Positions 2,188 through 53,743 are shown, numbered from the stretch's first letter. The stretch is 64,000 bases of DNA from Macrostomum lignano (GCA_002269645.1 NIVC01001190.1:248001-312000); one strand, 5' to 3'. A program made the numbers and translations. Notes: generated from the letters alone by a model not told the origin.

Positions 2188-3773
2188 TCAGGTGAGCATG
2201 AGAATCTCCAGCTGCTTGAAGCTGTAATAGAACCCGTCAGTAATGTTTTTGGGAGAATTTGAAGCCCAAATTATGCCCTTGGCTCGGTTTGCATCTCCAA
2301 CATCCAGCGCTGTCGGGTAGTTGAAGTACTTGCCGAACGGACCTGAGGCATGGCAGCATGTGTGCCAGTGAGGCTGCTCAAATTTAACTGCACAATTTAC
2401 TGAATTGACTGCACAACCGGACAATCCGTAATCTCGGGTGACGAACTGCCGGTTCAAGCCTGGGAACAGGCAGTCTCCAAGGCCTCCAGCAGGCTCAAAC
2501 GTGAATTCAGACACCGTGTAGTTGGTGCTCTCGGCCAGAATGAGCACGTTCAGGTAGTAGGCGTAGATGTAGGTGTCGTTCCAGTACAGCAGGTCGACGC
2601 GGAACCGGTTGCTGCTGGGCTGAGCGCTGGTCCGGGCGTGCAGCCACTCCAGGCCTGTTCGTAATTTTTTTCACGATAGGGCTGTCATTCTGACAACAAT
2701 CTGTTGTGCTGTTTCTGCAAGTCTACGGTGCTGTATAACTAAAGAAATTCCAGGAGTTACTATCCAATAAGGAAAAACTGACAATTAATGATGAGGTTAT
2801 GATCAATCAAAAATTTAAAACCGTTCATTCTATTCGATACTGATAATCTCTTCCTTCTTACCAGCAAACTCACCAACAAAGTAGTTGCCGTGATAAGTGC
2901 CGAAGCCGGTCTTGTACTCGGCCCAGAGCCGGTCGAAGCTCAGCGCGTCCGACACTCGCAGGTTGACGGTCTCGAAGCACTGCTGAGTGCCCACAGTGTG
3001 AAACTCCTGAGTTGGAAATTCAAACGATTTATTAGATCGGCTATCCATAAAAGTGCATAAATGATGTCAGAAATCCAGCACTGCTTCCCAACACTCACAT
3101 GGACCGCTAGCTCAGAGCTGTTCGAAGGCTGCTCGAACCAGCGGCACAGCGGGTAGTCGGTGAGCAGAGAGCAGTTGCTGGAGTTGAACACAATCCCACG
3201 ACAGGGCGGAACCTCGCTGCACTTGGCAACGCAGCCAATGAGCGATGAGACAGCCGGCTGGTGCTGAAGGAATGCGGCGAAGATCTTCACCGAGTTGTTG
3301 GGAACGTGGACCCGCTTGTGAGTCACGTTCTGAGCCACCAAGTACTCTGAAGTGTCAAGACTATGGAATCAACTTGTGCTAGAAAGTAAAAGTACGAGCT
3401 TAGTTGCGAATGGAACTCCGGTCTCACCAGTCCAGAAGCTGCTCAACCTGTCGCTGGAGGCCAGACCGGACTGTCCACCACATGACGAATTCCAGCCGAG
3501 CAGCGCGGTCTCCGCAGTGAACAGTCGGCACTCACCGAGCTGCTCGACGCCATCAGCGGTGCTGGCAGCATCCAAGGTCAGAGCTGCGCACCAGAACTGC
3601 TTGACGCAGAGCATCGCGCACTGCTGCTTGGTGACCGGCTGCAGAGACCGCCACCCGGAGCTGGGGTCCGCTGGGCAGCCGGGGAACCTCGTGAGCTTGA
3701 GCGACGGCTGCTGGCAGCCTGAGCTGTACGACAGAGCCACCAGGCTCAGAAACGTCAGAATTAAAAAATTCAT
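2188..3773 (-). CDS. Secreted PAN-PAN-FReD protein, family 1 copy 1; exons 3773-3428, 3346-3099, 3006-2874, 2654-2188 (1194 nt, 397 aa)
   Basis: Signal peptide MNFLILTFLSLVALSYSSG. PAN-type C-x3-C motifs QQCAMLC...WCAAL...ECRL and IGCVAKC...CRGIVFNSSNCSL. FReD motifs SFDRLWAEYKTGFG, GLEWLHART, FRVDLLYW, SFKQLEILM. GT-AG junctions keep the frame. Confidence 0.9.
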
Positions 3774-4323
3774 TTTCGACCTTAGCTATACGGTAGGGCA
3801 AAAACTTTTTGATGGTTTTTCCTGCAGTCAAAGCATCTGAATGCAAGGCAGTTCCAGCCGTTTTATTGGGTGAAAAAGTGCTCAGCTGCTGCTTGTTTGT
3901 GGGGTGAATTTTAATTGGCTAAATCAGAATCGAAGCGCTTACGCTACTGGATCCCATCTGCTCATTGGCCAAAAGGGAAAATGAAATATGAAAATTCATT
4001 CCACTCCGCTGCACAAAGTATGGAAAGGTAGACTTGCAAGGTAGTTTCTGATTCAGTAATTTTTTCGATTTGGAGCCAATTTTATCTAAATATAACAAAA
4101 TACTCGCGTCTAATAGTCTAGTGAAAATTTTCAATACTTTGCTCACCGATGATAAACAGACAGACGGCGGCATCCATAGAATACGAAAACGCCTGCTGGT
4201 TTTCATTATAAAATTATTTCAACTGTGAGCTGAGGAGGATAAATGGAAGGTTGTAAGGGAAATATTTCGCACCATTTTACCGTATTAAGCAGCTATATTT
4301 ACCTTTTGTTGATATCTTTGTAG

Positions 4324-4646
4324 GAGGTTGTAGCCTGCGGTTAGAGCGTCGTACTCACGACTTGAAGGTCGTGAGACAATTGAAGCAATCTGTGTCCTTC
4401 AGCAAGAAACGCAACTCTGCATTGCTTCAGTTCATTCATCAGTAAAATGGGTGTCAGCGTTAGCCAGCTGGGGTTATTGAGGGTGTGTGACTGTGTGAGT
4501 GTGGCGAACCCCCCCCCCCCCCCAGTCATTGGGCTGAACACTTAACAGCCGTACGCAACCTTCAGGTGGGCCGTGCAATGGCTTCGGCTGAGCTGTCGGT
4601 TGCACATCTAGCCCAATTGGGGCAGGCGTAATGTGTTATTATTATT
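4324..4646 (+). mobile_element. tRNA-derived CORE-type SINE, copy 1
   Basis: A-box-like TAGCCTGCGGTTAGAGC. The segment TGTGTCCTTCAGCAAG...TGCTTCAGTTCATTCATCAGTAAAATGGG resembles the MIR/CORE domain. (TTA)n tail. Homologous to 58212-58460. Confidence 0.7.
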
Positions 4647-6358
4647 AATATTTATGTTCAGAAAATTTCAAAGCGTCAACTTTAATAAATTAATAAGACA
4701 TGATTGATAACATCAAAATTTTAAATGCTTGTAGTTGGCTGATAGTAGTATGAGGCAACGCTGCTTACCCATTTATTGAGTCAATAAAAATGAATGAAGA
4801 ATTATAGGCGCAAGTACGAAAGTACATGAAGTTGATTCGACGCTTTACCAATCCATGCACGTGCCAATCAAACACATGCCATGTCAAGAAATTGCCTAGA
4901 ATGCAACGGCCGTTGAGAATTTGAGAAGACAATGTTTTGTACTTCCACCTTAACGATCCAAATATCGTGTTTAAAGCACGCTTAAGACATTCCAAAATAT
5001 CCTCGTCAGTCACCTGCACCGAAACACCCCACAGCCGCTGGATAACTTAATTTCTCAGATTAGAGTACTTTTTTAATTATTTTTACCACCCATGCAAGAC
5101 TTTCTTCCAAAGCATTGATCAGACTGAACTTTTCATGCAGGTAAATTCTTTTTTGTATAATTTTTTACATTAAATAATTATCAATATATACGAGCGTAAT
5201 AACGTGCAGCATTGTTCTGCTCAAGTGTACAAATCCGGTCTAATTCAGCCAATATAATTTGGCGCATTTTGGCGGAGTTTAACGTCACTTAAATCGTAGG
5301 GTGCGCGGTCACACCCAACGACGCCGAAGAGTAGCGAAAAACGACCAGAAGTCAACTTGCATCAACTTGTATTGTACAGCAGGTCTTAATGAAACTCACA
5401 AATCATATTTGAGAATATGAGAATGAATGCGAACATTTATTCTGTAGGTTGAATCTCATCTGGTTGAAAGCCAGCATTACCGTGCATGTACGAGCTAGCT
5501 AAAGCTCCAGGCTAATACATTTTACTAGCATCAAATGAACTTCACTGCTTCTAAAATTGGTCCGTTTAAGTGTACAGTGTGGCAGGTGTCTTTGTGTTAC
5601 GAATTTAGATCGATTATTTAATTAATAATGAACGATGTCGATGCAGCGCGTGCTGAGAGTTTATTTCAATCAAATCACAATTATAATAATCTACTCTTAA
5701 TATTATAGATAGCAACGAGCGTACCATAGTACTCGTAGTATTGCAATGAGAAAATGTGAGGGAAGGAGAGCGAGAGGGAGAATACGTTTTATATACTCCT
5801 AGATATTTTATGAATTATACGGTATAACAAAAAATACGTTAACGCTAAATAAGAAAGTAAGATTTAAGTATAATGTAGAAGGAGATTACGAATATTAAGC
5901 TGTACGATACAAAAAAAGAAAAAAGGTGAAATAAAGGAAGTGACATCGTTACATTTGTATCTGAGTAGCTTTTTCATGAGTGAATTTTATTTGGTAAGAA
6001 TCGACTGAAATGTATTGAAGAGCTTTTGTTTGATTCAAACGAAATATTCTGCCTTTCGGCTGACTGTTGCGAAGAAATTTACGATTCTTACAAAGTTACA
6101 TGTAGAAGATTAGAAGATCGAGAGACGCCAGTTCAGGTGCAGCAGAATTCAAAACGGGAATTATTAGGCAAAAATGAGTTAAAAAGAGAATTGAAAATAC
6201 AAAAGGAATAATAAAGTTATTCATGTAGGCCTTTGCGAAACAGTTTTAGCAGCAAGAAGCGCCAAAGAGGCTGCTTAGCGTTTGCTGATTGACTGGCGAA
6301 AAGGGGCTGCAGGTGGGTTGGGTCAGAGGAATATTGCGATGAAATCCTCAACTCATAT

Positions 6359-7152
6359 GAGTTTCCACGCTTCAAGGTGAGTGTTCGAAACCCAAATGAG
6401 TTTCCACGCTTCAAGGTGAGTGTTCGAAACCCAAATGAGTTTCCATGATTCAGGGTGAGTGTTCGAAACCCAAATGAGTTTCCATGATTCAGGGTGAGTG
6501 TTCGAAACCCAAATGAGTTTCCACGCTTCAAGGTGAGTGTTCGAAACCCAAATGAGTTTCCATGATTCAGGGTGAGTGTTCGAAACCCAAATGAGTTTCC
6601 ATGATTCAGGGTGAGTGTTCGAAACCCAAATGAGTTTCCATGATTCAGGGTGAGTGTTCGAAACCCAAATGAGTTTCCATGATTCAGGGTGAGTGTTCGA
6701 AACCCAAATGAGTTTCCATGATTCAGGGTGAGTGTTCGAAACCCAAATGAGTTTCCATGATTCAGGGTGAGTGTTCGAAACCCAAATGAGTTTCCATGAT
6801 TCAGGGTGAGTGTTCGAAACCCAAATGAGTTTCCATGATTCAGGGTGAGTGTTCGAAACCCAAATGAGTTTCCATGATTCAGGGTGAGTGTTCGAAACCC
6901 AAATGAGTTTCCATGATTCAGGGTGAGTGTTCGAAACCCAAATGAGTTTCCATGATTCAGGGTGAGTGTTCGAAACCCAAATGAGTTTCCATGATTCAGG
7001 GTGAGTGTTCGAAACCCAAATGAGTTTCCATGATTCAGGTGGAGTATCCGCAACCCAAATGAGTTTCCATGATTCAGGTTGAGTATCCGCAACCCAAATG
7101 AGTTTCCATGATTCAGATTGAGTATATTCGCAACCCCAATGAGTTTCCATGA
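6359..7152 (+). repeat. 39-bp minisatellite (GAGTTTCCATGATTCAGGGTGAGTGTTCGAAACCCAAAT), about 20 units
   Basis: Contiguous tandem units with no spacers; edge units diverged. Confidence 0.97.
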
Positions 7153-7644
7153 TTTAGAGTCTAGGAGGAAAACTCTTTTAAATAACAAAAAACGTCCGCT
7201 TTTTCATGTTTTTTAGCGTCATTCTGCCGCAAATTTCCAGTGCAAGAAGTATTGTTTTATGGCAGACTTGCTTGAGTGCAAACTTGTTTGAGTGCAGAAT
7301 GAGTGCAAAAGGACAACTTAAAACATGACAAGTTAAGGAAAACCTTGGTGCAGTTGCAACGTGGGGACAAACAGCTGAAAGCTATCAAATATCTTGTTTG
7401 ATTCAGGTAAACCAAAAACCTTGTTTGCGACTGAAAAGTCTGGAAAATTATTTACATTGCAAGGAATCGACGAGCAGCTCGATTAACGAGTAAAAAGCCA
7501 GGAGCGCTGCTAACACTGCAGAAATTGCCATTGAAGCCTACATGTGCACAGCCTTTCACCATACTGGTTCTGTGAGTTTACTCTCGTTCAATAAGATTTG
7601 AAGTCAGAGAACCCTCTGATCAGCAATTGAACCCAATACAAAAC

Positions 7645-9599
7645 TCAAGTCAGCATGAGAATCTCCAGTTGCTTGAAGCTGTAGTAGTGCCCATCAGTGA
7701 TGTTATTTGGAGCATTTGAAGCCCAAACGATGCCCCTGGCTCGGTCTGCAGCTGGCACATTCAGCGCTGTCGGGTAGTTGAAGTACTTGCCGAACGGACC
7801 GGAGTTGTGGCAGCATTTGTGCCACTGAGGCTGGTACCTTTGGGCACAGTTCAGTCCATTACTGCAGGTACTCAAGCCACGATCTCGAGTCTGAAACTGG
7901 AAGTTATTGCCGACGAACAAGTCCTGGTGAAGACCTCTAGCAGGCTCAAATGTGAATTCAGACACCGTGTAGTTGGTGCTCTCGGCCAGAATGAGCACGT
8001 TCAGGTAGTAGGCGTAGATGTAGGTGTCGTTCCAGTACAGCAGGTCGACGCGGAACCGGTTGCTGCTGGGCTGAGCGCTGGTCCGGGCGTGCAGCCACTC
8101 CAGGCCTGTTTGTGAGAAAATTTTACATGGCTTGCTTTAGAATTTCCCATTAGAATTAATAAGCATCGCCTGCTTGATTTTGATTTTGTTCCTATGTAAA
8201 CACAGTGTGTCCCCATTTATCTCATATAAACTGCCGAAGCAAAGCTTTTACACAGCTACTTAAGATGCACAAAGCAAACACATTTGGTCTTTGACAAACG
8301 AGAATATTTCATATTCTCGCTTGCCTCATCTTTATCAGATAAGTAGAGCTTTTAATATTCTAATATCCTATTTTAATATGGGAAGAGAAATCTAAAAGAT
8401 TTGAACATGCGGAGTACTTTTAGTGTAGCTTAGTGGAGTGTACTTTTACGAGTAGCTTTAAGTGCTGAAGTAGAATATGTAATAGTTGCTAAAACTTCAA
8501 AGTTTCTTCTTCAAATTTAGATAGACTGGATTTTCGAACAAAAAAGTTTCTTCAACCACACATCATATTTCTGAATTTCGAAAATAATAAAATTTGCCTA
8601 TGGTCTAAAAAGGTTAACTAAATAATTTTTTCTTATATCAAAAACACACTGCGCATACGACCATAAACTCAACTAAAAGAGCCCCTAGGAACTCACCAGC
8701 AAAGTAGTTGCCGTGATAAGTGCCGAAGCCGGTCTTGTACTCGGCCCAGAGCCGGTCAAAGCTCAGCGCGTCCGACACTCGCAGGTTGACGGTCTCGAAG
8801 CACTGCTGAGTGCCCACAGTGTGGAACTCCTGAGTTTGAAATTCAAACGATTTATTAGATCGGATATCAATAAAAGTGCCTAAATGATGTCAGCGATCCA
8901 GCACTGCTCTCCCAACACTCACATAAACGGCCAGCTCAGAGGTGTTCGGAGGCTGCTCGAACCAGCGGCACAGCGGGTAGTCGGTGAGCAGAGAGCAGTT
9001 GCTGGAGTTGAACACAATCCCGCGACAGGCCGGCAACTCACTGCACTTGGCAACGCAGCCAATGAGCGATGAGACAGTCGGCTGGTGCTGAAGGAATGCG
9101 GCGAAGATCTTCACCGAGTTGTTGGGAATGTGGACCCGCTTGTGAGTCACGTTTCGAGCCGCCAGGTACTCTGAAATGTCAAAAGACTATGGAATCAACT
9201 TGTGCTAGAAAGTACGAGCACAAGCTTATTTGCGAATGGCACTCCGGTCTCACCAGTCTGGAAGCTGCTCAGCCTGTCGCTGGACGCCAGACCGGACTGT
9301 CCAACACAGGACGAATTCCAGCCGAGTAGCGCGGTCTCCGCAGTGAACAGTCGGCACACACCGAGCTGCCCAATGCCATCAGCGGTGCTGGCAGCATCCA
9401 AGCTCAGAGCTGCGCACCAGGACTGCTTGGCGCAGAGCATCGCGCACTGCTGCTTGGTGACCGGCTGCAGAGACCGCCACCCGGAGCCCGGGTCGGCTGG
9501 GCAGCCGGGGAACCTCGTGAGCTTGAGCGACGGCTGCTGGCAGCCTGAGCCGTACGACAGAGCCACCAGGCTCAGAAACGTCAGAATCAGGAATTTCAT
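7645..9599 (-). CDS. Secreted PAN-PAN-FReD protein, family 1 copy 2; exons 9599-9254, 9170-8923, 8829-8697, 8105-7645
   Basis: Same exon sizes and phases as copy 1 (346/248/133) with a 461-nt last exon; open frame; signal peptide MKFLILTFLSLVALSYGSG. Confidence 0.9.
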
Positions 9600-10249
9600 T
9601 TTGGAGTTCAGCTAAAAACTTATGGCTTAAAAAAATATAAAAGTTTTTTGATAATTTGGTCTACTTCTGCAACTTCAGCCTGCAGTAAAAGCATCTGAAT
9701 GCAAGGCGGTTCTTACTGTTTTATCGGGTGAAAATGTGCTCAGCTGCTGCTTATGCTCGCATTAGTGTGGATTATTGTAATTGGCTGAATGAGCTACGAG
9801 GGGCTTGTGCGGCTGGAAACAATTAAATTTTCCTAAAAGTACTAAGTGCTGAGAACTCAGCAGCGAAATTCGTGTGCTTTAGCCGAAAGAGTTCTGAAAG
9901 TTGGTCACTGTACTGACGAATTAGTACACTATTCGCGTTTCCTATTACCATGCAAAATTTAGAAAACTGAGTGTCTGTATCAAGATTTTTGAGGCGTTTC
10001 GAGATCCGATATGCATCTTCAGGTTTACTTGCTGACCAAAGAGCACAATCCTAATAGCAGTAAATATAGCCTCGTTTGGCGGCTCTGGCAAAGCCCAATA
10101 TCTCTTGAGACCTCTCCAAGGCTGCTCCGAGTCTGAGGTTTCAGCTCGGATTTTTGCTTGCATTTATACACAATTTAAGTCGAACTTGAGCCCCAAACCG
10201 GTTTTGTTGACGAGGTCAAAAAATGGATTTTGTCCTTTGACCGGTGGGG

Positions 10250-12648
10250 TACTTACTTACTTACTACCGACGGGGGGCAGAGCGCCGCGAATAGGCCGCG
10301 AGGCCCCTATCGCAACCCCAAGCTAAAAACAGAAAGGCGTTAGCCTTGGGGCTGCGCCCACCCCTCGCCAGCAGCAGAAGAGCTCGCGAGAGTGGCGTCT
10401 GCGATCTTCATCCGCCCAGAATCCCGAACGAATGCACGTAGGTCACGGATCCGGTCGGGAGTGGTGAGCTCGTCAAGCCTTAGCGTGTGACCGAGGTGAC
10501 GCCTCCGCGCCTCTTTGAAGTGCGGGCAGAAAGTGACGTGGTGCGTCGAGGTTTCCTCCTCTAGATCACAGAATGGGCAGATAGGGGAGCAGCCACTTTG
10601 CAGTGAAATATGTCTCTGGAAGAAGCCATGGCCAGTAATGACCATGCACATCTACCTCAGGTCAATTTTACTTAAGGAGACTAGATATTCGGATACTTTC
10701 CGGTTTATGGCAGGCATAGCCTTTCGTGCTTGCCGGTATTCGGAGCAGCTGTCCCAGTGAGTCTGATGCTGGCGGTTCAGCCAATCTTGAATGGCGCAGT
10801 TGAGTGATGACTTCGGAGAAGGTAACTTGACTGAGCGCTGCGCCCCATCAGGGGTGCAACCCCGCTTGGCAAGCTGATCCACAAGCTCGTTGCCGAGGAT
10901 GTTGCTATGGCCTGGTGTCCAGATAACATTGATCCTGTTGAGAATCGCTAGGGTCTGCAAGCTTTTGAGGCAGTCTGAAACTGACTTGGTCGAGAGCTTG
11001 ATGGAAGACAAGGCCTTAATAGCGGCCTGGCTGTCAGAGTAAAAATAAATGTCAAAGCTGCTGATACCAGCTTTGTGCAAATGCTCAGCGCACTGGTTGA
11101 TGGCTACAACTTCGGATTGAAAAACCGAGACATTCTCACCAAGATGAAGACTCTCTTGTAAGATCGCTTCACCCTTGTGGAAAATGGCAATGCCCGCACC
11201 AGCGAGACCGTCACACAGGGATCCGTCAGTGAAGCAGTGAATACCCTGGCTTCTCCGGTTGATGCCCACGTCCAGTGGGTGACTCCCTCTCGGTGGAAGA
11301 GTACACTTGAAGCCCCTCCTGAGGATGAGAGTGGGGGATCTGCAGTCCACCTCGTCTAAATTGAGGTGGATGCGTTGAAGATCGCGACGGATATAGTCCA
11401 GATGTGGGAAAAGAGTCTTCTCAGGCATGAAGCCCGAGGGCGTGTTAGCAATAAATTTATCACAGATGAGACGCGTGGCGCCCTTCATCGCCTCAGCTCT
11501 AATGAACAAATGCAGCGGAGGCATGCTGAGGATGGTGTTGAGCCCCTCGTAAAGGGTGGATGGATACGCACCAGTGATGGCTCGGCAGATGTTACCCTGC
11601 AGTTGGTACAACCGGTCCCGAACAGTCTTCAACTCCAACGCACTGGACCAGATAACACACGCGTAGGTGATACTGGGCCGGATGATGACGGTTTAGATCC
11701 ATCTGACCGTCTTGGGAGAAAGACCCCAATTAGGGTCTCTCATTCGCGCTCTTCGCGCTCTCCTCACCTGCGCGAAGCAGCGCCTGGCGCGCCCGATGTC
11801 ATTGTCAGCGTGCTTGGTCCAACGCAGATCGTGGGTGAGCGTCACACCTAGATACTTAGTTTCCTTGACTAAGGGTATGTCCTTACCATAGATGGTGAGG
11901 TTCCGCATGCTCCACTTCCGCTTCCTGGTGAAGATAATGGCCACCGTCTTAGCGGTGCTAATGGTTAGGCCGTGCCGGGTAGCCCAGGCTTGCGCCTTAT
12001 CGGCGAACTGCTGCATTAAGCTTCGGAGGGTGCTGGTGTCAGGGCCACTGACAATAGCAGCGACATCATCAGCGTAGCCAGCCTTGACTATGCTGCTAGG
12101 GACGTCAGCCGTCAGGAGCTCGTCCATCACGAGATTCCAGAGCAGCAGGGTGAGCACTCCACCTTGGGCTCCGCCCTTAGTAACCGTATGAGTGCAGGTG
12201 GCATCTATGAGGGAGGAAGTCACCTTCCTGTTCCGGATCATAAAGTCGATCCAACGCACAATGCTGGGTCGGACCTTTTTCTGCAAAAGGGAGTCACTGA
12301 AGGAGCCAAATAAAACGTTATTGAAGGCCCCATCGATATCACAGAAAAGCCCACAGGCAATCTGCTTACTCAGGATAGCTTTCTCAATGGCTGAGGTAAT
12401 AACATGCAAAGCGTGCTCGGTGGTTTTACCTGGTTGGAAGGCGAATTGGTGCTTACTTATGGGTGCCGTCCTTAACTCGCAGTCGCGCAGCCTCCACAAG
12501 ATGAGTCTCTCCATCAGCTTAATGCAGAAGGATGTTAGGCTGATGGGGCGGAAAGATTTCACATTAGTATAGTCGCCTTTGGCAGGCTTGGGGATGAAGA
12601 CCACCCGAGCGGTCCTCCAGATAGTGGGAATGTACCCAGTGGTGAAAC
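10250..12648 (-). mobile_element. 5'-truncated non-LTR retrotransposon with RT, RNase H and C-terminal CCHC finger (LOA/R1-like)
   Basis: RT motifs [39 protein letters not shown]; RNase H FTDGS...QSEVVAI...YSDSQAA...GNELVD; zinc finger CPFC...[10 protein letters not shown]; 3' (TAAG)n tail at about 10250-10264. One frame broken by two in-frame stops (TAA at about 11693, TAG at about 10652). Confidence 0.92.
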
Positions 12649-12714
12649 TATTTTATTCAAAAGAAACTTGAAGTTACAAGCGTAGCCCAGAAATAATTTG
12701 AGCTGCTCAGAGTG

Positions 12715-13510
12715 TATCCATTTATTAGGACGCAGAGGAAAGAGCCTTTGCCGCACGCTGGCAGAACAGGCAGGAGGGACAGCAGCAGCAGCCTGAGGGG
12801 TCAGTGCAAGCGCCTGCAAGTCAGAGATGAGGCAGTCAGTCAAAGTGGCAGTGCGGGCCTGGCCGCGGTGCAATTGCTCGGTCGTCCCGTGCAGCAAAGC
12901 CAGATGAGCGTAATGCGGTCCAGGGTCCGTAGACAGTGGACCAGCAGCATCTGACGGCGCCGGCGCAAGGTATCGCTTAGGGGCGGAGCTACACATGGGC
13001 GGGTCATCACAGCGTTGGTCGGCAGGCGCTCCGGGTGGTGCACGTCCAGCGTGTAGCGCAGCAGCGATCGGCAGAGCGCGTCCAGGGCTCGCTCTCGCGT
13101 CTTGGTCTGCGGCACAGCCTCCATGCCGTACAGCAGGATCGGTTCTAGAGCGCACAGGCGCACCTGCGCACCTTCAGGTCGTCTCTGGCAGCTGGATTGA
13201 AGACGTACCTGAGGAAGTGCGCGGCACTCCAGGCCGGGTTCCTCCTGTCGGAGACAATGGCATCGGGCTTCATCACCAGGGCACCGAGGCACCGAAAGTC
13301 CTCGCACACCGTAATGCCGTCTCTGCACTGGGCAGAGTGAGAGTTTGGGTGGTATTTGGGCCCACGTGCAACGATTCCGTCTTGCGAGCGTGCACCAGCA
13401 GCTCAACACGGCGCCCTCGTTGCAGAGCCTTGTGAGAGCGCGCTGGACAGCAGCTGAATGTTGGGAGAACAGCGCGATGTCCTCAGCATACGCGAGATCG
13501 CAGGAAGCAA
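12715..13510 (-). mobile_element. RTE-like non-LTR retrotransposon, decayed RT C-terminal half
   Basis: Across frameshifts: DLAYAEDIALFS (degenerate YADD), VCEDFRCLGALV (cf. VEDFKYLGS), DDLKVR...EPILLYGMEA, LDALCRSLLRYTL, RRRRQMLLVHCLR. Confidence 0.85.
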
Positions 13511-14479
13511 AACAGCAGGGTGTAGGCAGACTGCCTTTATTATACAGTATTCAAAACTGAATTATTCAGTACCTGGCATCACTAGCAACTCACCCAGACT
13601 CCATCATCTCGCGACCCAGTTTACAGTAAGGCTGGCATTACAGCTAAAAGAATAGCAAAATAATGCGAAACCGTCAGCATGGACGGCCAGCAAAATCAGC
13701 CGAAACACACAAAGCCCGTTTTGAACTTGAATTTACGAGACACTGTAGGAAAATAGTAGAGAACTCTGCAGAGCTGAGTCACTTACTACAGCTTCAAATG
13801 GCACTAATTAACCGAAAAGTATTTCCTAGAAATTTCCAATCTAAAAGTAAGGCTCACCCTGTCACAGTTTGCCGGTAGATTAGGAAAGCATAAACTCGCC
13901 CGTGAAAAATGAGGACTGTGAGACCAAAGATCCCTTGCGAGAACAAGACCTGCCCAAAGTGTCATGTGGGGTAGAAAGGGAAGTTCACTTCCTGTTTAAG
14001 TGCGTTTGGAACTTTTATAGTGTTCCGTGTGATAAGTTGAGCAGGAAATCTTCAAAAGTTTTCAGGAAATTTTTTTTAATTTCAAAACATTACTGCAGAG
14101 GATATCGCAATCGCAATCGTAATCGTAATCGCATCTAAAGACTCGAGGAGATCAATTTAAGAGACTCAAGAAACTCAAGAGACATTTTATCACTCATGAC
14201 TCTATTCGACTAAAATTATGACTCAAGAGAAGGAAAATGGAACGGAATGAAGAGAATGGAAATTCTTGCAAATTTCATGAAAGACGGGCCACAAGAGAGA
14301 CTGCAACATCCTGAGGTTTAATAATTGTAAAAATGAACAAACACTTTTTGCTGATAATGATAGAATCCGAGACCCAATACACAATTCTAAAGCTTGAAAA
14401 CAGTTAAATAAGTTGATGATCGACGATCAAATTAACGACTTCAACCACTCGGTTAAGTTGAGTAGCTTCAGATATTTCC

Positions 14480-15858: not shown

Positions 15859-15996
15859 TTTTGACGTAAAATTAGCCTTGAAGCAAAAAAGAGCTTTGAA
15901 CAGCCACAGTGATCAGCAGAGGAGCAGAAAAATGTTTAGGAATTTTATTATTGTTCAATAAAAGTGAGCTCACAAACCAATGAATCGAATTAGCAT

Positions 15997-17272
15997 TCAG
16001 GTCAACATGAGAATCTCCAGCTGCTTGAAGCTGTGGTACCATCCGTCAGTTCTTTGGAGCAAACGATGCCCTTGGCTCGGTCTGCAGCTGACACGTTCAG
16101 CGCTGTCGGGTAGTTGAAGTACTTGCCGAATGGACCTCAGGTATGGCAGCATGTGTGCCACTGAGGCTGGAACATTTGGGCACAGTTCTCTCCATTACTG
16201 CAGGTACTCAAGCCACGATCTCCAGTCTGAAAATGGATGTTCTTGCCGACGAACAAGTTCTGGTAAAGACCTCCACCCGGCTCAAACGTGAATTCAGACA
16301 CCGTGTAGTTGGTGCTCTCGGCCAGAATGAGCACGTTCAGGTAGTAGGCGTAGATGTAGGCGTCGTTCCAGTACAGCAGGTCGACGCGGAACCGGTTGCT
16401 GCTGGGCTGAGCGCTGGTCCGGGCGTGCAGCCACTCCAGGCCTATTTGTGAGAAAATTTTATGTGGCCAGAGACGGTCGAAGCTCAGCGCGTCCGACACT
16501 CGCAGGTTGACGGTCTCGAAGCACTGCTGAGTGCCCACAGTGTAGAACTCCTGAGTTTGAAATTCAAATGATTTATTCGATCGGCTATCCATAAAAGTGC
16601 CTAAAATGATTTCAGCGATCCAGCACTGCTTTCCCAACACTCACATAAACGGCCAGCTCAGAGCTGTTCGGGGCCTGCTCGAACCAGCGGCACAGCGGGT
16701 AGTCGGTGAGCAGAGAGCAGTTGCTGGAGTTGAACACAATCCCGCGACAGGGCGGAACCTCGCTGCACTTGGCAACGCAGCCAATGAGCGATGAGACAGC
16801 TTGCTGGTGCTGAAGGAATGCGGCGAAGATCTTCACCGAGTTGTTGGGAATGTGGACCCGCTTGTGAGTCACGTTTCGAGCCGCAAGGTACTTTGAAATA
16901 TCATGCGTCAAAGCGATAAAATTCTGGCATCAGCCATTAGCTGCTCAGCCTGTCGCTGGACGCCAGACCGGACTGTCCGCCACATGACGAATTCCAGTTG
17001 AGCAGTGCTGTCTCCGCAGTGAACAGTCGGCACTCACCGAGCTGCCCGGTGCCATCAGCGGTGCCAGCATCCAAGCTCAGAGCTGCGCACCAGGACTGCT
17101 TGGCGCAGAGCATCGCGCACTGCTGCTTGGTGACCGGCTGCAGAGACCGCCACCCGGAGCCCGGGTCCGCTGGGCAGCCGGGGAACCTCGTGAGCTTGAG
17201 CGACGGCTGCTGGCAGCCTGAGCCGTACGACAGAGCCACCAGGCCCAAAGATGTCACAATCAGAAATTTCAT
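15997..17272 (-). pseudogene. PAN-PAN-FReD family 1 copy 3, pseudogene
   Basis: Exon-1 donor deleted (SDRLSS then TAA). Exon-2 acceptor AG changed to AA. Deletion from mid-exon 3 (after FDRLW) to the end of intron 3. Premature TGA after CCHT at about 16137 and further small deletions before the terminal stop. Confidence 0.9.
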
Positions 17273-32212: not shown

Positions 32213-36077
<3,865 letters not shown>

Positions 36078-39889: not shown

Positions 39890-40500
39890 TGTCCCTTTCT
39901 CATCGCTTGCTAGCGCTCCTTTCTCATCGCTTACTGACGCCCCTTTCTCATCGCTTACTGACGCCCATTTCTCATCGCTTGCTGGCATCGCTTCCTGGCG
40001 CTCCTTTCTCATCTCTTACTGACGCCCATTCTAATCGCTTACTGACGCCCCTTTCTCATCGCTTGCTGGCGCTCCTTTCTCATCGCTTACTGACGCCCCT
40101 TTCTCATCGCTTACTGATGCCCCTTTCTAATCTCTTACTGACGCCCCTTTCTCATCGCTTACTGACGCCCCTTTCTCATCGCTTACTGACGCCCCTTTCT
40201 CAACGCTTGCTGGCGCTTCTTTCTCATCTCTTACTGACGCCCTTTCTAATCGCTTACTGACGCCCCTTTCTCATCGCTTGCTGGCGCTCCTTTCTCATCG
40301 CTTACTGACGCCCCTTTCTAATCGCTTACTGACGCCCCTTTCTAATCGCTTACTGACGCCCCTTTCTAATCGCTTACTGACGCCCCTTTCTCATCGCTTG
40401 CTGGCGCCCCTTTCTCATCGCTTACTGACGGCCAGTTCTCATCGCTTATTGGTGCTTATTTCTAAGTTTCTTGGTGCCCCTTTTTCATCGCTTACTGGCG
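39890..40500 (+). repeat. 24-bp minisatellite CTTACTGACGCCCCTTTCTCATCG
   Basis: About 25 tandem units with variants. Confidence 0.95.
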
Positions 40501-40949
40501 CCTACGCTCGTATGTCAAATATAAACTGAAATTTATACACGAGCATGCAATTCCCTCTTCTTTATGTTTTCACAGTTGCTGATAAAATAATTCAAAAGCA
40601 TGCATCTGCTATTGCTTCTATCTACACTGCTAATCGGAACTCAATGCAGCAATTCTGTGTGCTGACTGCTTACTTCCAGCGCGTGCTGGATGTTGACCGA
40701 AGGTAACATTTTTATTAAAATCCTGTCCCTTGCAGAGAGATCTGACAAAATAAATAAATTAATTCACAGTCACAGCTACGTAAATACAGACGAGCTACGG
40801 CGCGCGCTGGGGACAGTGGAGTGACTGTCCTGAGGGTCATTTTGGCAACGGTTAAGTCACACAGTTCTTTAATACCATCGCACAAATCACATGTCTTCAA
40901 CGTTTTAATAAATTTTCACACCACTCTTATACTGATATACATCCTACAT

Positions 40950-43752: not shown

Positions 43753-44159
43753 TGTCACGGGCATTGGATACACACTCAAGTGCAAAATTACTAAATGGAG
43801 TTCTCAGATAAGCTCTGTGATTCATTTGGGTACAAGAGTTAAGAAATGCACTGAAGATTTTTTCGCGAGGTTAATGTCGTGTTCAGATTTAACTTTTTAA
43901 GAAACTTGGAAATCTGTTAATTAACTTTAAATGAATAATTCAAACATTACTGATTGTCACTGATATCCAGCATAGCTGTGTCTGTTCGATGTTTCAACGA
44001 AAAATTGTCCATGAGTACTTAGAGAGAATACTTCAACTTTTTATGGTATTTTGTGGCTTATCACTAACTTTTTCTGCTGATTTCTAACTGATGTAGGAGT
44101 TGTGTCTCTTCAATTTTCTGACAATTCATACTTACATCTACAATAGAATCTACTGTCTC

Positions 44160-44732
44160 TAGGTGGGCACCCCTGCTGTCTCTTGGTGGACACCCCTGCT
44201 GTCTCTTGGTGGGCACCCCTGCTGTCTCTTGGTGGGCACCCCTGCTGTCTCTTGGTGGGCACCCCTGCTGTCTCTTGGTGGGCGCCCCTGCTGTCTCTTG
44301 GTGAGCGCCCCTGCTGTCTCTTGGTGGGCGCCCCTGCTGTCTCTTGGTGAGCGCCCCTGCTGTCTCTTGGTGGGCGCCCCTGCTGTCTCTTGGTGGACAT
44401 CCCTTCTGTCTCTTGGTGGACACCCCTACTGTCTTTTGGTGGACACCCCTACTGTCTCTTGGTGGACACCCCTTCTGTCTCTTGGTGGACACCCCTACTG
44501 TCTCTTGGTGGACACCCCTTCTGTCTCTTGGTGGACACCCCTACTGTCTCTTGGTGGACACCCCTACTGTCTCTTGGTGGACACCCCTACTGTCTCTTGG
44601 TGGACACCCCTACTGTCTCTTGGTGGACACCCCTACTGTCTCTTGGTGGACATCCCTTCTGTCTCTTGGTGGACACCCCTACTGTCTCTTGGTGGACACC
44701 CCTACTATCTCTTGGTGGATAACCCTACTGTC
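44160..44732 (+). repeat. 23-bp minisatellite CTGTCTCTTGGTGG(G/A)CACCCCT(G/A)
   Basis: About 25 tandem units with a polarity of variants along the array. Confidence 0.96.
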
Positions 44733-45727
44733 TATTAGACCCACATGAATAGAAGCCACAGATGCCACATTGAAGAGGTTGAAGGGTGCATAAGTTGAGC
44801 TCCTGTCTTTCGTGGAGCTTGTTTGACCTCCTGTAGTTTTCTAAATAGCGCAGTTTTTTCGGGGAGATTAAAAGAGGTTGTTGAAGCCCCCCCCATTTCC
44901 CCTTCTCCCTTTGATCGGTGCGAGCGTAGAAGTGATAAATTTTTACTTTCTTTTCTGCTTTGCTATCGTTAATTTTTTACGTCAACTTTCTTTTTTGTGT
45001 TCTATCGTGAAAATAAACAGGTATCTGCAGTTTTCTGTCTATTAGACAGCCGGTTTTTGTGACTTTGTGAATTTGTGACTTTGAGGCAATGAATGAATTA
45101 TTGACACACGTTCATCGAGTTGAATGATTTTGCACAGACTCAATAGGCTTTTAGGGATAGAACTCCTCATTAGGTGGAATTTCGTGCGTTTCAACACGCA
45201 AGGGCTGGTTGCAATTAGCAAAGCTCCATGACTTCTACAAGCTGATGAAGCGCTTAAATATGCTATGTGTAACAATGCCGCCACAAAACCCGGCAATGTG
45301 GAGCCTCCCATATTTTCAGTTTCGAGAGCTGCAGTTAGCGACGCTAGTTTAAGAAAAACCGGAAAACTGCATCCCAGATGCGCACACGCACTGCTGTACT
45401 GACAATGGGTTTGAAAAAGTCTTTACTGTTCAATGCGCCAACGCTCCGGTTAGACATAAGGCCCCAGAATCGATGAAACTTCCTTTAATTGGCTTCTATT
45501 CATTTGAAGCAGCTTGCGCGAAATTACCGTCCTTAAATGCAGCTGCGCCTTTGTTAATGAGGAGATTTTAGGAGGCCTGCTTTGGAAACGCATCGACTCA
45601 AGCAGTTCAATAGCAACAACAGGTGCTTTAGGGAGGTAAAAGCGTTGAGACAAAGCCAGCAACCAGAGACAGTCGGTTTTTAGGCGAGGCAACTAAAATC
45701 GAGCGGATTCATAACCTTGCCTGCAGC

Positions 45728-48700
45728 ATGTCCGCTTTTCTTGTCGCCGTTGCTGCGTGTCTAATCGACGGGACTCCGTTTTTGACTGGGGCTGGAGCAG
45801 AAGCCGGTAAGTTCCATTGTACATTATAGTTGACAGTTCAATATTTTTATCATTTTTACGCATATACTGAAGTATTAGCAATTCATGCCGTTTATTTTTT
45901 CTGAGCTCACTGCACGTATCCGATATGCTGTAGCGACGCCTAAAAGCTCCATCAACCCTGGGCCAGAAGAAAGTTCATTTCTACGTTTCAGTGTTTTCTA
46001 CCGACGAGATTTTGCAAACCACGACGGCTCCGATGACGTCACAGCCTGGACGCAGCGCTGTAGACTGCGCCTTTAAATGCGAGTTCTCGCCCGAAAGAGA
46101 CTGCTCCTCTGTCGTCTTTGTTCCTGAGACGAAGCTCTGCCTCCTTTCCGAGCTGCAGAATGCCGAATTCGCGGCTGTCGCTCCCACTGGTCTGGTCTAT
46201 CGAAAGAAACTGGACAGTAAGTTGAAGTTTATTCGACCTTATTGGAACAAACGACTTAAAATTATCAATAGATTGAGGCACTAGTACCTGCGAGCTCGTT
46301 GGTAACAAGGCTTTTTATTAGAGAATCTTCGGTTCGTTATTTTTAGAGGGGCCAATCCACATTGACGGCCGGACATTCCAAGTGATCCAGCACAGATCGA
46401 AGGGCGTGCTGAGCTTTGCTCGAGGCTGGACTCAGTATGAGGATGGCTTTGGAGACGATACGGACTTCTGGATTGGTGAGTGTCACGTTATTTGATGTTG
46501 GCCGTGACCCTTAAAAGGGCCGTTTTAGTCCCAAAATAAGTTGAAGTCAACTTAGGCGAAGTGAATGGTGTAGCGGAGCACTTGGCAATAAGGGCAGGAA
46601 ACTGCCGTAGTCGTTTTTATTATCAATATAAATAGTAAGTTTGGTTGTTACTGGCAAATAACAAACTATGGCTTTCTGGGCACTGGCGGCTGCAACAATG
46701 GTTTCTTTTTTGAAGATAAATTGGATGTGAGTTCAAGCGACAGACGAGTGATGTAATGGCGACGTAACGTGATGATCAATGGCAATGAGTACAGTGAAGG
46801 CAGTGAGACGTAGTAGGCAGGCAGATGAGCAGTGGCGAGGTTGGCGTCAGCCGTGGCGTGAGGTAAGGAGGCTCGAGGCAGCCAGACAGAGAGAAGGAAA
46901 ACACACACAAGGCCAAGGACAGACGGGGAGAGAGAGCGAGGGAGAGAGAGGAGAGTGGAGTGCCCGCCGCCAGGCGGGAGGGGGGGTTTAATAAAGGAGC
47001 GCAGAGGGGGGTAGCGCGAAGCACGAGTGGTTTTCATTGGCTGGCGAGAGAACTTAAAATTATCGATCGTGCCAATTTTATACGGTCGCGAGAGAGGATA
47101 GCAAAATATACAGTGAATTAGAAATTGCCACAAAATCGTTGGGCACTACTACAAGTAAACGTCGCAATAAACAAATGGAAAAGTTTAGTTGAAACGGTGA
47201 AACTGAAGGGTTGAAACTATAGAGAAACAGCAGTCCAACGGCCCTTTTCGGGACCACCTTAAACTGACAACGTCACAGTGAGCACTGAGTCACTCAAAAA
47301 GATGAGGCCAAGCGTCTTGTAATTTCATTTTGATTTTTTAATATCAGATTTTACTAAATGTAAAAAATTGAAAACTCTCTTTTAGTCTTTTTAGTGTTCA
47401 AAAATCGAAAACTAAAAAATCTTTAACTTGATCCTGTCGGTTTGTAACAGATTGCTCCACGAAATGAGCTCAAAATCAATATACGAGTATGCACGGAAAC
47501 TGTGATGCAATAAGGAACTTTAAAATTCAAAACAGTGTGCTCTATTTCGTCATATATGTTCTTAAAAAAATTAATATTGTAACGGAACTTTATGTCCGGC
47601 TCTCCTGTCTGTTTCTACGATCAAAGATGCTGGTGTCTTTCGTGCTGATTTTCTGAGCTGAGAGAGTGCGGAATAGTCAACGTAAATTACAATTTCGTGG
47701 CTGTCACTACCATATCACTCACTGTCGCACCTTTCCTAGATTACCTCTGGAGACAGTGAAGCAGCGAAATGTTAAAATTCCTCGGAATCAATTTGAAATC
47801 TGTTTTTGAACAGCAGTGGTAGGGTGGCTTACAGTAGTCCACGAAGTACTAAATTATGTTTACCTTCTCTTGTGTATCCGTCTAGTCTGAGGGAAAGTGG
47901 AATTTCCCGTAATTTCCCGAAGTAGCCTTTACTGTAGAAATCAGTTGTGATACCTTCAGTTGCAAGTGATACCTAATCGTCAATTATATGAGCAATTCAT
48001 ATCAAGAACAGTCAGCTCTGGTCTCAGAATGCCTCAGTATTTCTGTTAAAATGATGCAGAAGTATGTTCATGCTTGCGACATCATGATACGATGAGGAAT
48101 GCAAAAATAGTCTCACAATGCACAAGGTCTAAAAACGACCTCATATTCATATTAATAGTGAAACTTCCGCTAGATATCTTTTAAAGCATTTAGAGTTTCT
48201 GTTCCTTTTGAAATACTGAATCATTTTATTGTAACTGTAAGTAGTAAATTCGAATAGTTATTTAAAACAAGCTGCATGTAATAGCCAAGCAAACATATAG
48301 CTCGTATGGCCGATAACACTTAAAATTTTCAGGACTTCGCAAAATCCACGAGCTGACCGGAAGCTCGCCGAAGCTACTGCGAGTTGAAGCCGTCACCTGG
48401 TCGGATGAGCTGTACGTCTGCGAGTACTCCGGCTTCACGGTGGCCGATGCCAGCACGAACTACACCATGACCTACACTTCGTATCTGAGCGGCAGCTCCA
48501 ACACGACCAGCGACTCGCTTGCTGCCAACAAGGGGATGCAGTTCTCCACCATGGACCGCGACAACGACAACTATGGATCTTCTTGTTCCAACCGACGTGG
48601 AAATTCCGGTTTGTGGTATAATGGCTGCTCTAGGTCTAATCCCAACGGAGTTTATCGCTACTCAGCAGGGACTGATGAAGAATTCATGCACTGGGCAGGT

Positions 48701-48760
48701 GCTACATCTGAGAATTTTATCGCGCTAAAAAGTGTTCGCCTGATGCTCCAGTGGCCCTAA
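45728..48760 (+). CDS. Secreted PAN-FReD protein, family 2 gene B; exons 45728-45806, 45992-46216, 46347-46475, 48333-48760
   Basis: Exon sizes 79/225/129/428 match gene A; open frame; intron 3 enlarged to 1857 bp. Confidence 0.9.
46481..47277. mobile_element. Solo LTR (797 bp) in gene B intron 3
   Basis: TGT...ACA termini with imperfect inverted ends (AAAAGGGCCGTT / AACGGCCCTTTT); 5-bp TSD GTGAG at 46476-46480 and 47278-47282; TATAAAA and ATTAAA on the minus strand. Confidence 0.85.
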
Positions 48761-50452: not shown

Positions 50453-51322
50453 CAGGCGCCTCGCCACCGGGGGGGGGATGGAACAGGGGAGACATGCCCC
50501 CCCCCCAGTAAAAGCTCTGGGGGGACATGCCAATTCTTTGTCCCCCCCACCCCACCTTGCGACTCGTCAAAAATAAATAATTTTTCTTCAGGGCGTCAAA
50601 ATATAGCGCCTTCGGCGCTAAAATGAGTGCCTGCGGCGCCAAAATGAGTGCCTGCGGCGCCAAAATGAGTGCCTGCGGCGCTAATAGGAATGCCTGCGGC
50701 GCCAAAATGAGTGCCTGCGGCGCCAAAATGAGTGCCTGCGGCGCCAAAATGAGTGCCTGCGGCGCCAAAATGAGTGCCTGCGGCGCTAATAGGAATGCCT
50801 GCGGCGCCAAAATGAGTGCCTGCGGCGCCAAAATGTGTGCCTGCGGTGCCAAAATGAGTGCCTGCGGCGCTAATAGGAATGCCTGCGGCGCCAAAATGAG
50901 TGCCTGCGGCGCCAAAATGAGTGCCTGCGGCGCCAAAATGAGTGCCTGCGGCGCTAATAGGAATGCCTGCGGCGCCAAAATGAGTGCCTGCGGCGCCAAA
51001 ATGAGTGCCTGCGGCGCCAAAATGAGTGCCTGCGGCGCCAAAATGAGTGCCTGCGGCGCTAATAGGAATGCCTGCGGCGCCAAAATGAGTGCCTGCGGCG
51101 CCAAAATGTGTGCCTGCGGTGCCAAAATGTGTGCCTGCGGCGACAAAATAAGTGCCGGCGGCGCCAAAATGAGTGCCTGCGGCGCCAAAATGAGTGCCTG
51201 CGGCGCCAAAATGAGTGCTGACAACACGATTCTCAAAATAATAGAAATGTACTAATTTAGTCATGTACATGTTGAATTCTTGACTTCGTCACCCCACCAT
51301 AAAGGCAATGGCGACGTCCCTG
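50453..51322 (+). mobile_element. hAT-type MITE (870 bp) carrying an internal 21-bp array GCCTGCGGCGCCAAAATGAGT
   Basis: Imperfect TIRs CAGGCGCCTCGCCA / TGGCGACGTCCCTG; perfect 8-bp TSD ATCAAGCC at 50445-50452 and 51323-51330. Confidence 0.9.
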
Positions 51323-52022: not shown

Positions 52023-52113
52023 AGGGACTGGCTGACGGAGCTGTCTGCCCCTCCATCAGGTGCTGAGCACTCAGCATGCAATGAATCCTCATTGCCGTTG
52101 CTGTCGCTCTCTG
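52023..52113 (+). pseudogene. Relic duplicate of the gene C 5' region and leader exon
   Basis: Aligns with about 52495-52585 (GGACTGGCTGAC...CCATCAGGTGC...ATTGCCGTTGCTGTCGCTCTCTG), but codon 3 is TGA. Confidence 0.8.
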
Positions 52114-52547
52114 AAATTTCTTTGCAAAAAACAAAGTGCTCTCTAGTGCTCTTCATAGAAATCCGAAGTCAATTAATGCCCACCAATGGATGCGTGATAC
52201 ATACACATGACTTATTAACTGCAGACAGTAAGTGGACTAACTGCAGAAATAGAGCAGAATTTTCAGTTACAGAACTGGCCTTGTCTTCCGCTTTGCAAAC
52301 AAACTCTGTTTCAGAGCAGCACTGCTGGACAGTCCAGAACAATGGAAGAGAAAAAGTCTCATTGGCCAACAAGTCGGTGTTAACTCAGCCCCAGTTCACT
52401 TCTGTTGATTCCTCAATCCTAGGTATGCATTGGCAACATGTCAGTCAATATCTCCTGTTTTTTAGAATCTCTATAAAACAGGAACGAAAGCGATAAGGAC
52501 TGGCTGACAGCGCTGTCTGTGCCTCCATCAGGTGCAGAGCACTCGGC

Positions 52548-53743
52548 ATGACACCATTCCTTATTGCCGTTGCTGTCGCTCTCTGCAGCGGCTCAACTGT
52601 TTGGACTCTGGACAGTGCAGCATCTGGTAAGTCAAGCTTTTTGAATGAGTGTGGAAGTACTTCAGTAGTTGTTAAGAAGGTTTAAATTCATGCGATTTGC
52701 AGTGTTTTCTCAAGAGGAAGTTGCGCACACCACACCTGCTCCGATTCACCACGAGCCCGGTCGAAGCGTTGCTGACTGCGCACTGAAATGCGAGCAGCCC
52801 ATCGTGAAGTTCTGCTCCGCCTTCGCCTTCGTGCCAGAGAAGAAGCTCTGCCTGCTCTCCGAGATACCGACTGCCGATTTTGCACCTGTCGCTCCTGGTG
52901 AACTGGTTTATCGAAAGCTTATGGCTAGTAAGTTTTTATGTCGAGCCTGTGTTCACTAATAATAAAATGAATAGCTGTGAATTCTCAAAAATTGTGAAAA
53001 TAATAAGTCGCTAAACGGTAGCTAAAATCAATCGCTTTGATTAATAAATGAATTCACTAGTTCACGCACCGCTAGACACACTTAAACATTGTTTGCTTTT
53101 TTGATATATCAGAACGAATCGTCCAAATCAACGGACTAGAATTCCAAGTGATTCAGCACAGGTCGAAGGGCGAGCTGAGCTTTGCTCGCAGCTGGACTGA
53201 GTATGAGAACGGCTTTGGAGACGATACGGACTTCTGGATTGGTGAGCAGGACACTTTAGCTTTACCAAACACTAATCGAATCAATAAAGACTTATGGATA
53301 ATTTCATTTTTTTCATTTCAGGCCTTCAAAAAATCCACGAGCTGACCGGAAGCTCGCCGAAGCTTCTGCGAGTCGAGGCCGTCACCTGGTCGGATGAGCT
53401 GTACGTCTGCGAGTACTCCGGCTTCACGGTGGCCGATGCCAGCACGAACTACACCATGACTGGCATTTCGTACCTGAGCGGCAGCTCCAACACGACTGCC
53501 GATTCGTTCACTTTTAACAGGGGGATGCAGTTCTCCACCATGGACCGGGACAACGACCAATTTGGAAATCATTGTTCCAGCAGCTTTGGAAACTCCGGTT
53601 GGTGGTTCAAAAGCTGCTCGCATACCAACCCAAACGGTATCTATTATAGCACTGCTATGACTAAAACAAATGCAATGCACTGGGCTAGTGCTACATCCGG
53701 GAATGGTGTTGCACTGAAGAGCATTCGATTGATGATCCGTTAG
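52548..53743 (+). CDS. Secreted PAN-FReD protein, family 2 gene C; exons 52548-52626, 52703-52927, 53113-53241, 53322-53743
   Basis: Signal MTPFLIAVAVALCSG; exon sizes 79/225/129/422; FReD GMQFSTMDRDND, GWWFKSC. Confidence 0.92.

Follow-up and report, generated by a model that had tools for sequence, protein, structure and literature searches.

The genome of Macrostomum lignano, a free-living flatworm, contains, in a 64,000-nucleotide stretch of a single contig of assembly Mlig_3_7 (GCA_002269645.1, NIVC01001190.1:248001-312000; hereafter the window), seven copies of genes for small, putatively secreted proteins that end in a fibrinogen-related domain (FReD). This locus raises the question of why a worm would keep side by side a set of genes whose heads, in one of the two types present, are almost identical up to a sharp border and then diverge over a segment that aligns with the calcium loop and ligand pocket of ficolins. 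We read the locus as two related families of small secreted FReD proteins, expanded in this lineage and arrayed in tandem, whose members would serve diversified ligand recognition. Taken alone, the account of structure and evolution is highly probable; the statement as a whole, with its functional part, is tentative.

Seven FReD genes of two types

Searching the window with one A-type and one B-type query protein (tblastn) recovered four A-type copies (A1-A4) and three B-type copies (B1-B3) at positions 2188-53743, and no further fragments. This agrees with a preliminary description of the DNA, which had reported a seven-gene cluster of two subfamilies (four plus three), six of them with intact spliced frames: when genes were modelled with GT-AG splicing and exon limits from paralog alignment, six of the seven copies gave spliced open frames (Table 1). 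The A1 product consists of a putative signal peptide, a cysteine module (module 1), a PAN-like module (module 2) and the FReD. A4 is inverted relative to A1-A3, and A3 is a pseudogene. In its intron 1 the donor is deleted and the acceptor AG is changed to AA; the end of exon 3 (17 codons) is deleted together with intron 3; and further downstream an in-frame TGA follows CCHT and an indel lies close to the 3' end. We ruled out that the seven copies are a haplotype or assembly artefact: their orientation, introns and flanks are not the same, and transposon sequence and minisatellites lie between them.

The A2 model is identical, residue for residue, to NCBI protein PAA70997.1 (BOX15_Mlig016986g1), as is the translation of the five A4 exons to PAA70998.1 (BOX15_Mlig022000g1). 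Since the NCBI Mlig annotation comes from a genome-guided RNA-seq assembly, these exact matches indicate that both genes are transcribed, with splicing as in the models. Residues 1-171 of B3 are identical to the UniRef model P0005 across three junctions; no exact counterpart of A1, B1, B2 or full-length B3 was found in public protein sets. A shorter intron 2 for the A-type genes (58 nt, acceptor GGATAG) was rejected as out of frame; the true intron is 92 or 93 nt long, ends in ACTCAG and matches PAA70997.1.

That the proteins are secreted, as had been claimed at the outset, is suggested by hydrophobic N-termini, judged by eye; for A4 the identity of the first exon as a signal peptide is uncertain. 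In A1-A3 the signal peptide is contiguous with module 1, unlike in A4, whose separate first exon (22681-22741) reads MKLTAKHSELLQLLLWKLLT. A first exon of the A4 type also heads A-type genes at other loci whose module 1 differs (P0003, as well as units within P0042 and P0043). The variety of N-termini suggests that the 5' exon or module 1 has been shuffled between arrays.

The C-terminal head

The Pfam domain Fibrinogen_C (PF00147; cut-off 22 bits) is present in all seven copies, with scores of 61.3 bits for A1, 60.7 for A2, 119.4 for B1, 129.9 for B2 and 130 for B3. The match begins at profile position 38-48 of 221, and the cysteine pair of the canonical A subdomain is absent. The last PAN-like cysteine lies 34-36 residues before the 'QxR' strand, a spacing equal to that of the canonical A subdomain; the strands predicted for a B-type paralog, P0008, also fit, and the alignment of several canonical FReDs to the A-type profile starts exactly at the last PAN-like cysteine. 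The head may be a diverged full-length FReD and not a truncated one.

The first sequence matches of the A-type proteins in the PDB are ficolin-2 and ficolin-1, and the top matches of the B-type proteins are ANGPTL2 (angiopoietin-related protein 2), angiopoietin-1, ficolin-2 and tenascin-R. An AlphaFold2 model of P0008 (pLDDT 81) matched L-ficolin, M-ficolin and ANGPTL2 in Foldseek, with E-values of 1e-15 to 1e-14 and target-normalised TM scores of 0.70-0.76. The model of an A-type protein, made from a five-sequence alignment, reached a pLDDT of 30, so that structural support for the FReD fold holds for the B type alone. B-type heads contain an invariant DRDND, equivalent to the DxDxD calcium loop, together with a GGWW-like motif and NPNG. 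Because this calcium site is kept, the B-type heads are probably Ca2+-dependent and lectin-like. A-type heads carry extra cysteines and an invariant CCH, in which the Cys-His of the pocket is kept, and the pocket cysteine pair aligns in both families.

The N-terminal modules

PAN modules had been assigned to both types in the preliminary description. Against the PAN/apple profiles (PF00024, PF14295), only module 2 of A1 (22.7 bits) and B2 (23.7 bits) exceed the PAN_1 cut-off of 21.4 bits; A2 (18.4), B1 (17.2), B3 (18.1) and P0008 (20.4) fall below it, and module 1 of the A type has no Pfam match even at E<=10. All three module types contain the pattern C-x3-C-x5-9-C-x10-19-C, and hhalign comparisons between module 1, module 2 and the B module register, weakly, on this shared cysteine core (E 0.005-0.08). 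Residues 41-97 of the P0008 model form strands and one helix (pLDDT 80-90), and one B-type fragment is named 'Apple domain-containing' in UniProt. We therefore call the modules PAN-like, a borderline assignment under which a 'PAN-PAN' layout for the A type is unproven. The models contain no Pfam collagen match and no Gly-X-Y run, no Ig-family Pfam match at E<=1 and, by Pfam search, no coiled-coil or other oligomerising stalk of the kind found in angiopoietins.

Gene conversion among linked copies

Identity among the A-type genes is a mosaic. Across exons 1-2 and introns 1-2 identity runs at 90-96%, with intron 1 down to 70-78% when A4 is compared; it reaches 98-99% in exon 3 and 99-100% in the opening 160 nt of exon 4. 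Over the next 145 nt, the hypervariable block, identity is 63-67% between A1 and A2 or A4 and 88% between A2 and A4, and the remainder of exon 4 is 87-92% identical. The fall from 100% to 63% at about nt 160 of exon 4 forms a sharp tract border. Synonymous divergence (dS) is 0.03-0.06 in the A-type core versus more than 1.4 in the A1 block, and the near-identity of exons 1-2 reaches into the introns. The G+C content of third codon positions (GC3) is 0.95-1.0 in the homogenised blocks versus 0.35-0.55 past the break, as expected from GC-biased conversion, although codon selection could contribute. Intron 3 of A1 (219 nt) cannot be aligned with that of A2 (591 nt) or A4 (620 nt), and the flanks of the genes show no relationship. 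In spite of this unalignable intron, A1 is near-identical to A2 and A4 on either side of it, in exon 3 and early exon 4.

The B-type copies are old, with dS values of 0.4-1.0 in the PAN exon, exon 3 and most of exon 4, and in the PAN exon a nonsynonymous divergence (dN) of 0.18-0.33 beside a dS of 0.5-1.0. The exception is a 46-codon FReD block that opens exon 4, in which dS is 0.11-0.29 and dN 0.01-0.03. Hence the earlier claim that both subfamilies combine a near-identical scaffold with a variable distal FReD applies to the A type (core 98-100%, block 63-88%) and only in part to the B type, of which only the 46-codon block is near-identical. The dS of this block is 0.11-0.29 within the array in the window and 0.27 within a tandem pair at a second locus (L002, described below), but 0.53-0.79 between unlinked loci. 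Because low dS depends on linkage, the similarity of the B-type core points to conversion and not to constraint on silent sites. Near-identical silent sites, the contrast in GC3 and the confinement of low dS to linked copies together support local conversion between linked genes. The birth-and-death array with conversion-driven shuffling that was first proposed for this locus is supported by the pseudogene, the inverted copy, the retroelement insertions, the break in exon 4, GC3 and the dS of linked copies.

The contrast between scaffold and block extends to other loci. In a set of about 10 A-type units, made up of the copies in the window, a duplicate of A4, and the UniProt models P0002, P0003, P0042 and P0043 from other loci, protein identity is 75-98% in the scaffold versus 44-81% in a 56-column block. 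This A-type block aligns with the part of ficolins between the strand preceding the Ca2+ loop and the pocket cysteine, and in all A-type paralogs its variable positions are interleaved with strictly invariant cysteines, TRDRG, NCA and WHxCCH.

Substitution rates in the variable segment

We calculated dN/dS (omega) as region averages over three or four sequences per family, too few for site tests. In the P domain of the B type, dN/dS is 0.24-0.42. Between the A1 block and those of A2 and A4 it is about 0.3, with dN at 0.46 and dS saturated (>1.4). Between A2 and A4, dN/dS in the block is 0.92 (12 nonsynonymous and 3 synonymous differences), versus 17 nonsynonymous and 22 synonymous differences in the remainder of the gene (Fisher p=0.03), and omega outside the block is 0-0.4. 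This result shows rate heterogeneity, not positive selection. The preliminary description had named per-codon dN/dS as a check on the recognition idea; the region averages in the variable part are 0.24-0.9 and never above 1.

These rates bear on the possibility that the diversity is not adaptive. The array would then consist of old duplicates whose 5' part and core have been homogenised and whose 3' block has become too diverged to convert, with loops under weak constraint and copy number owed to a repeat-rich neopolyploid genome. The high dS and dN of the block (for A1, dS>1.4 and omega about 0.3) and the B-type omega of 0.24-0.42 are as this explanation would have them, and so are the 180 Mb of the assembly that lie in blocks duplicated with >=95% identity (PMC5730564), the second occurrence of the A3-A4-MATH-BTB-LamG stretch described below, and the death of A3. 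It accounts poorly, however, for an A2-A4 block omega of about 0.9 versus 0-0.4 elsewhere, and for variable sites that are interleaved with invariant cysteines, TRDRG, NCA and WHxCCH, unlike loop decay, in genes of which six of seven have intact frames. We consider this explanation unlikely.

Paralogs elsewhere in the genome and in other animals

Protein searches with the spliced models gave high-scoring matches solely in Macrostomum lignano. An exhaustive hidden Markov model (HMM) search with the A-type profile found seven proteins below 1e-30, and all six that could be traced are from M. lignano; other matches to this profile cover the FReD part only. The seventh protein, P0044, is a 150-aa fragment of an A-type FReD from a 687-bp contig in ENA. 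It is 51% identical to A2 and keeps TRDRG, WHTCCH and the C-terminal motif YYSFKQLEML, and it suggests that A-type proteins are also present in a divergent relative of Macrostomum or some other organism. The B-type profile matched about 21 M. lignano clusters at more than 190 bits, followed by generic FReDs at <=132 bits. Two chimeric UniProt models contain five and three A-like units.

Locus L002 (NIVC01001037.1) contains two tandem B-type genes, at 8124-9095 and 10188-11126, of which the upstream one is apparently frameshifted, and a stray PAN-like fragment at 13550-13720. The tandem pair, the frameshifted copy and the fragment indicate that B-type arrays with decaying members occur elsewhere in the genome. 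The stretch from A3 through A4 and the MATH-BTB gene to the LamG gene is itself duplicated: window positions 12673-35736 are collinear with NIVC01002176.1:129880-151935 (L004). For the initial 9 kb (12673-21687) the two are 99.4% identical, after which identity drops abruptly to about 93%; the duplicate could be a mosaic of homeologs or alleles, a product of large-scale conversion or an assembly chimera. The A4 duplicate differs from A4 at 20 of 403 residues. Because this collinear second copy exists, genome-wide counts taken from the assembly are inflated.

Outside flatworms, the predicted protein KAG5713876.1 of the gastropod Batillaria attramentaria contains two tandem units of PAN_1 (38.8 bits) and Fibrinogen_C, the latter matching from profile position ~31. 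From the PAN cysteines as far as the P domain, each unit aligns collinearly with the B-family HMM (62 and 60 bits). The units resemble the B type in that PAN_1 is directly followed by Fibrinogen_C, although similarity is low and KAG5713876.1 is a predicted model only, probably two fused tandem genes. The combination of PAN and FReD is thus not unique to Macrostomum, and the likeness could reflect common spiralian descent or convergence.

Diversified ligand recognition as a candidate function

Each protein combines a predicted signal peptide and a C-terminal FReD head with short disulfide-rich modules, two in the A type and one in the B type, of which at least one is PAN/apple-like. The array expands and decays through duplication, inversion, transposon insertion and pseudogenisation (A3), and conversion between linked copies holds the core of the head alike, silent sites included. 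A segment of about 50 residues, sited where ficolins have their Ca2+ loop and ligand pocket, escapes this homogenisation. From these features we infer secretion, ligand binding and a purpose for the diversity: recognition of extracellular ligands is the most likely function, and each paralog would offer a different pocket; the N-terminal modules might serve in anchoring or oligomerisation. An immune role is plausible, and our leading guess, albeit a somewhat doubtful one, is that the ligands are microbial or otherwise non-self. A more elaborate version, in which an old spiralian PAN-FReD family common to flatworm and gastropod has become in Macrostomum a germline-diversified recognition repertoire, with an exchangeable hypervariable pocket cassette in its converted arrays and a family-conserved face that couples to a common effector, is rather unlikely; if it held, Platyhelminthes would have in this array their first candidate for a diversified pattern-recognition system.

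Invertebrate FReD and fibrinogen-related protein (FREP) families are secreted, have a C-terminal FReD head, show lineage-specific tandem expansions and concentrate their variability in the ligand-binding P subdomain. The proteins of the window resemble the FReDs and FREPs of molluscs, the FBN/FREP proteins of Anopheles and the FReDs of amphioxus and cnidarians in the secreted FReD head (here predicted), in tandem expansion and in P-subdomain variability. They differ in having one or two short N-terminal cysteine modules in place of an immunoglobulin superfamily (IgSF), collagen or coiled-coil stalk; in a diversity of germline paralogs, known here from the genes alone; and in their host, a free-living flatworm. 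We regard the family as a variant on this known theme, set apart by its PAN-like stalk, by the pairing of a converted core with an unconverted pocket block, and by its flatworm host. Ficolins (L-, M- and H-) and tachylectin 5A include the best structural (B type) and sequence matches of the head: the B type keeps DxDxD and the P-domain cysteine pair, and the A type keeps the Cys-His. Unlike them, the window proteins have no collagen-like region, and over the first ~40 canonical positions, disulfide included, their sequence has been replaced or has diverged.

Several observations weigh against a recognition function. In all A-type paralogs TRDRG or TRDYG replaces the calcium loop, so that the Ca2+ ligands are lost. 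In the B type the second pocket cysteine is followed by Ser or Ala and not by the His that acetyl-binding FReD lectins such as tachylectin 5A and FIBCD1 have there; the residue after that is variably H, K, R or Q. Region-averaged dN/dS exceeds 1 in no region, and no transcript-based protein matching A1 or B1-B3 was found in public collections. Clustering alone means little in M. lignano, whose genome is a repeat-rich neopolyploid one that has recently been much duplicated (PMC5730564). Finally, the near-identical A4 duplicate (Mlig001043.g1) has positional counts of 14/12/27/22, is classed as 'Non-Specific', falls in the lowest expression bin and is unaffected by social treatment (PMC7336406). 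For this one gene of the family, expression is low and constitutive, with no sign of restriction to tail or prostate; inducible or rare-cell expression fits equally well.

We searched the full-text literature with Macrostomum and fibrinogen, PAN and fibrinogen-related, and Mlig022000, and found no study of these genes; the gene identifiers of the window had no match in the supplements of M. lignano expression papers, and a 2024 review of worm immunity gives no FReD receptor for free-living flatworms.

The array could encode seminal-fluid proteins or other secretions of the reproductive tract, the variable pocket resulting from sexual selection or conflict. At least seven FReD-type transcripts are among 76 prostate-limited putative seminal-fluid transcripts (Weber et al., 2018; PMC5977470 Table S1). 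They carry ficolin-, angiopoietin-, MFAP4- or FIBCD1-like annotations, respond plastically to social conditions, and include Mlig-pro7, 13, 25 and 39 (PMC5977470 Table S1). In a later study the prostate FReD transcripts map to Mlig005727.g3, Mlig019353.g1 and Mlig019538.g3 (Brand et al., 2020; PMC7336406 Table S11), and the same study reports that reproduction-related genes evolve fast in the genus (PMC7336406). Like the products of the window, Mlig-pro7, 13, 25 and 39 belong to this domain superfamily and are small secreted proteins, with mRNAs of ~1.1-1.4 kb. They are, however, different genes: none of eight prostate in situ hybridisation primers matches the window or loci L001-L004 at <=4 mismatches, and one primer pair encodes the canonical FReD motifs YWMGRE and ADCREY, which are absent from the A and B types; canonical FReD motifs occur at least in Mlig-pro25. 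The 'Non-Specific', socially unresponsive A4 duplicate also speaks against this possibility. A reproductive role is a serious alternative for FReD proteins of this species, and for the array we consider it quite unlikely.

PAN/apple modules commonly mediate protein-protein contacts, and the ligands of the array could instead be endogenous. The proteins would then be components of matrix, mucus or rhabdites, or signals like angiopoietins or tenascins, with paralogs specialised by tissue and not by foreign target. The presence of angiopoietin-related protein 2, angiopoietin-1 and tenascin-R beside ficolins among the best PDB matches of the B type fits this idea, and the block that is invariant within each family yet differs between A and B could be an interface with a partner. 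A single partner would nevertheless leave unexplained why the pocket is the most variable part in ~10 A-type and ~12 B-type paralogs, and the coiled-coil or oligomerising stalk of angiopoietins is missing. A role of this kind seems improbable.

Free-living flatworms are models of regeneration and stem-cell biology whose recognition receptors are almost unknown, and M. lignano offers RNA interference, transgenesis and transparent tissue, which make it possible to test whether the array is used in defence, for reproduction or to manage the microbiota. As a compact case of conversion that acts on part of a gene beside an old block, the locus could also help to separate selection from biased gene conversion in a neopolyploid genome. 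Should the function prove reproductive or structural, the array would be an ordinary lineage-specific expansion.

Neighbouring genes, mobile elements and repeats

A LamG-domain gene and a MATH-BTB gene had been placed between the A-type and B-type arrays, and Pfam scores confirm both; for the LamG gene this required joining three exons, which together match Laminin_G_2 at profile positions 6-126 (30.2 bits).

Table 1. Features of the window (positions counted from its first nucleotide)
Feature	Position	Strand	Details
A1 gene, 397 aa	2188..3773	-	exons 3773-3428, 3346-3099, 3006-2874, 2654-2188; GT-AG, in frame
A1 hypervariable block, old divergent type	2350..2494	-	exon 4, nt 161-305
A2 gene, 395 aa	7645..9599	-	exons 9599-9254, 9170-8923, 8829-8697, 8105-7645
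A2 hypervariable block	7801..7945	-	
Retroelement remnant, between A2 and A3	10655..13550, also 14700-15350	-	reverse transcriptase and RNase H open reading frames; RVT_1 93 bits, RNase_H 42 bits
A3 pseudogene	15996..17272	-	
A4 gene, 403 aa	22681..24875	+	exons 22681-22741, 22943-23251, 23321-23568, 23662-23794, 24415-24875; all introns GT-AG
A4 hypervariable block	24575-24719	+	
MATH-BTB gene, 403 aa	28985..30196	+	single exon; BTB 68.7 bits, MATH 32.1 bits; annotated in NCBI record
LamG-domain gene, approximate limits	32213..36074	+	LamG exons in 33874-34173, 35233-35433, 35937-36074
B1 gene, 286 aa	42650..43752	+	exons 42650-42728, 42813-43037, 43114-43242, 43325-43752; in-frame model
B2 gene, 286 aa	45728..48760	+	exons 45728-45806, 45992-46216, 46347-46475, 48333-48760; intron 3 of 1.86 kb
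B3 gene, 284 aa	52548..53743	+	exons 52548-52626, 52703-52927, 53113-53241, 53322-53743
Open reading frame with integrase core domain, then more open reading frames to window end	61461-63998	+	rve 34.7 bits
Minisatellites	6350-7154, 25366-26659, 30328-31734, 32430-33328, 34146-35232, 36978-38032, 39893-40501, 44150-44733, 50592-51218, 55603-56191		

The region of the integrase open reading frame (61461-63998) is probably another mobile element. A GC-rich region at 16-20 kb contains a 349-aa open reading frame (17930-18976, plus strand) that has no Pfam match. Much of the intergenic and intronic DNA is filled by long minisatellite arrays, in which units of 4-39 bp recur 20-225 times. Several of them occupy introns of the LamG gene, and one begins ~130 bp past the stop codon of the MATH-BTB gene. 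The repeat units of the arrays at 50592-51218 and 55603-56191 are apparently related, in inverse orientation.

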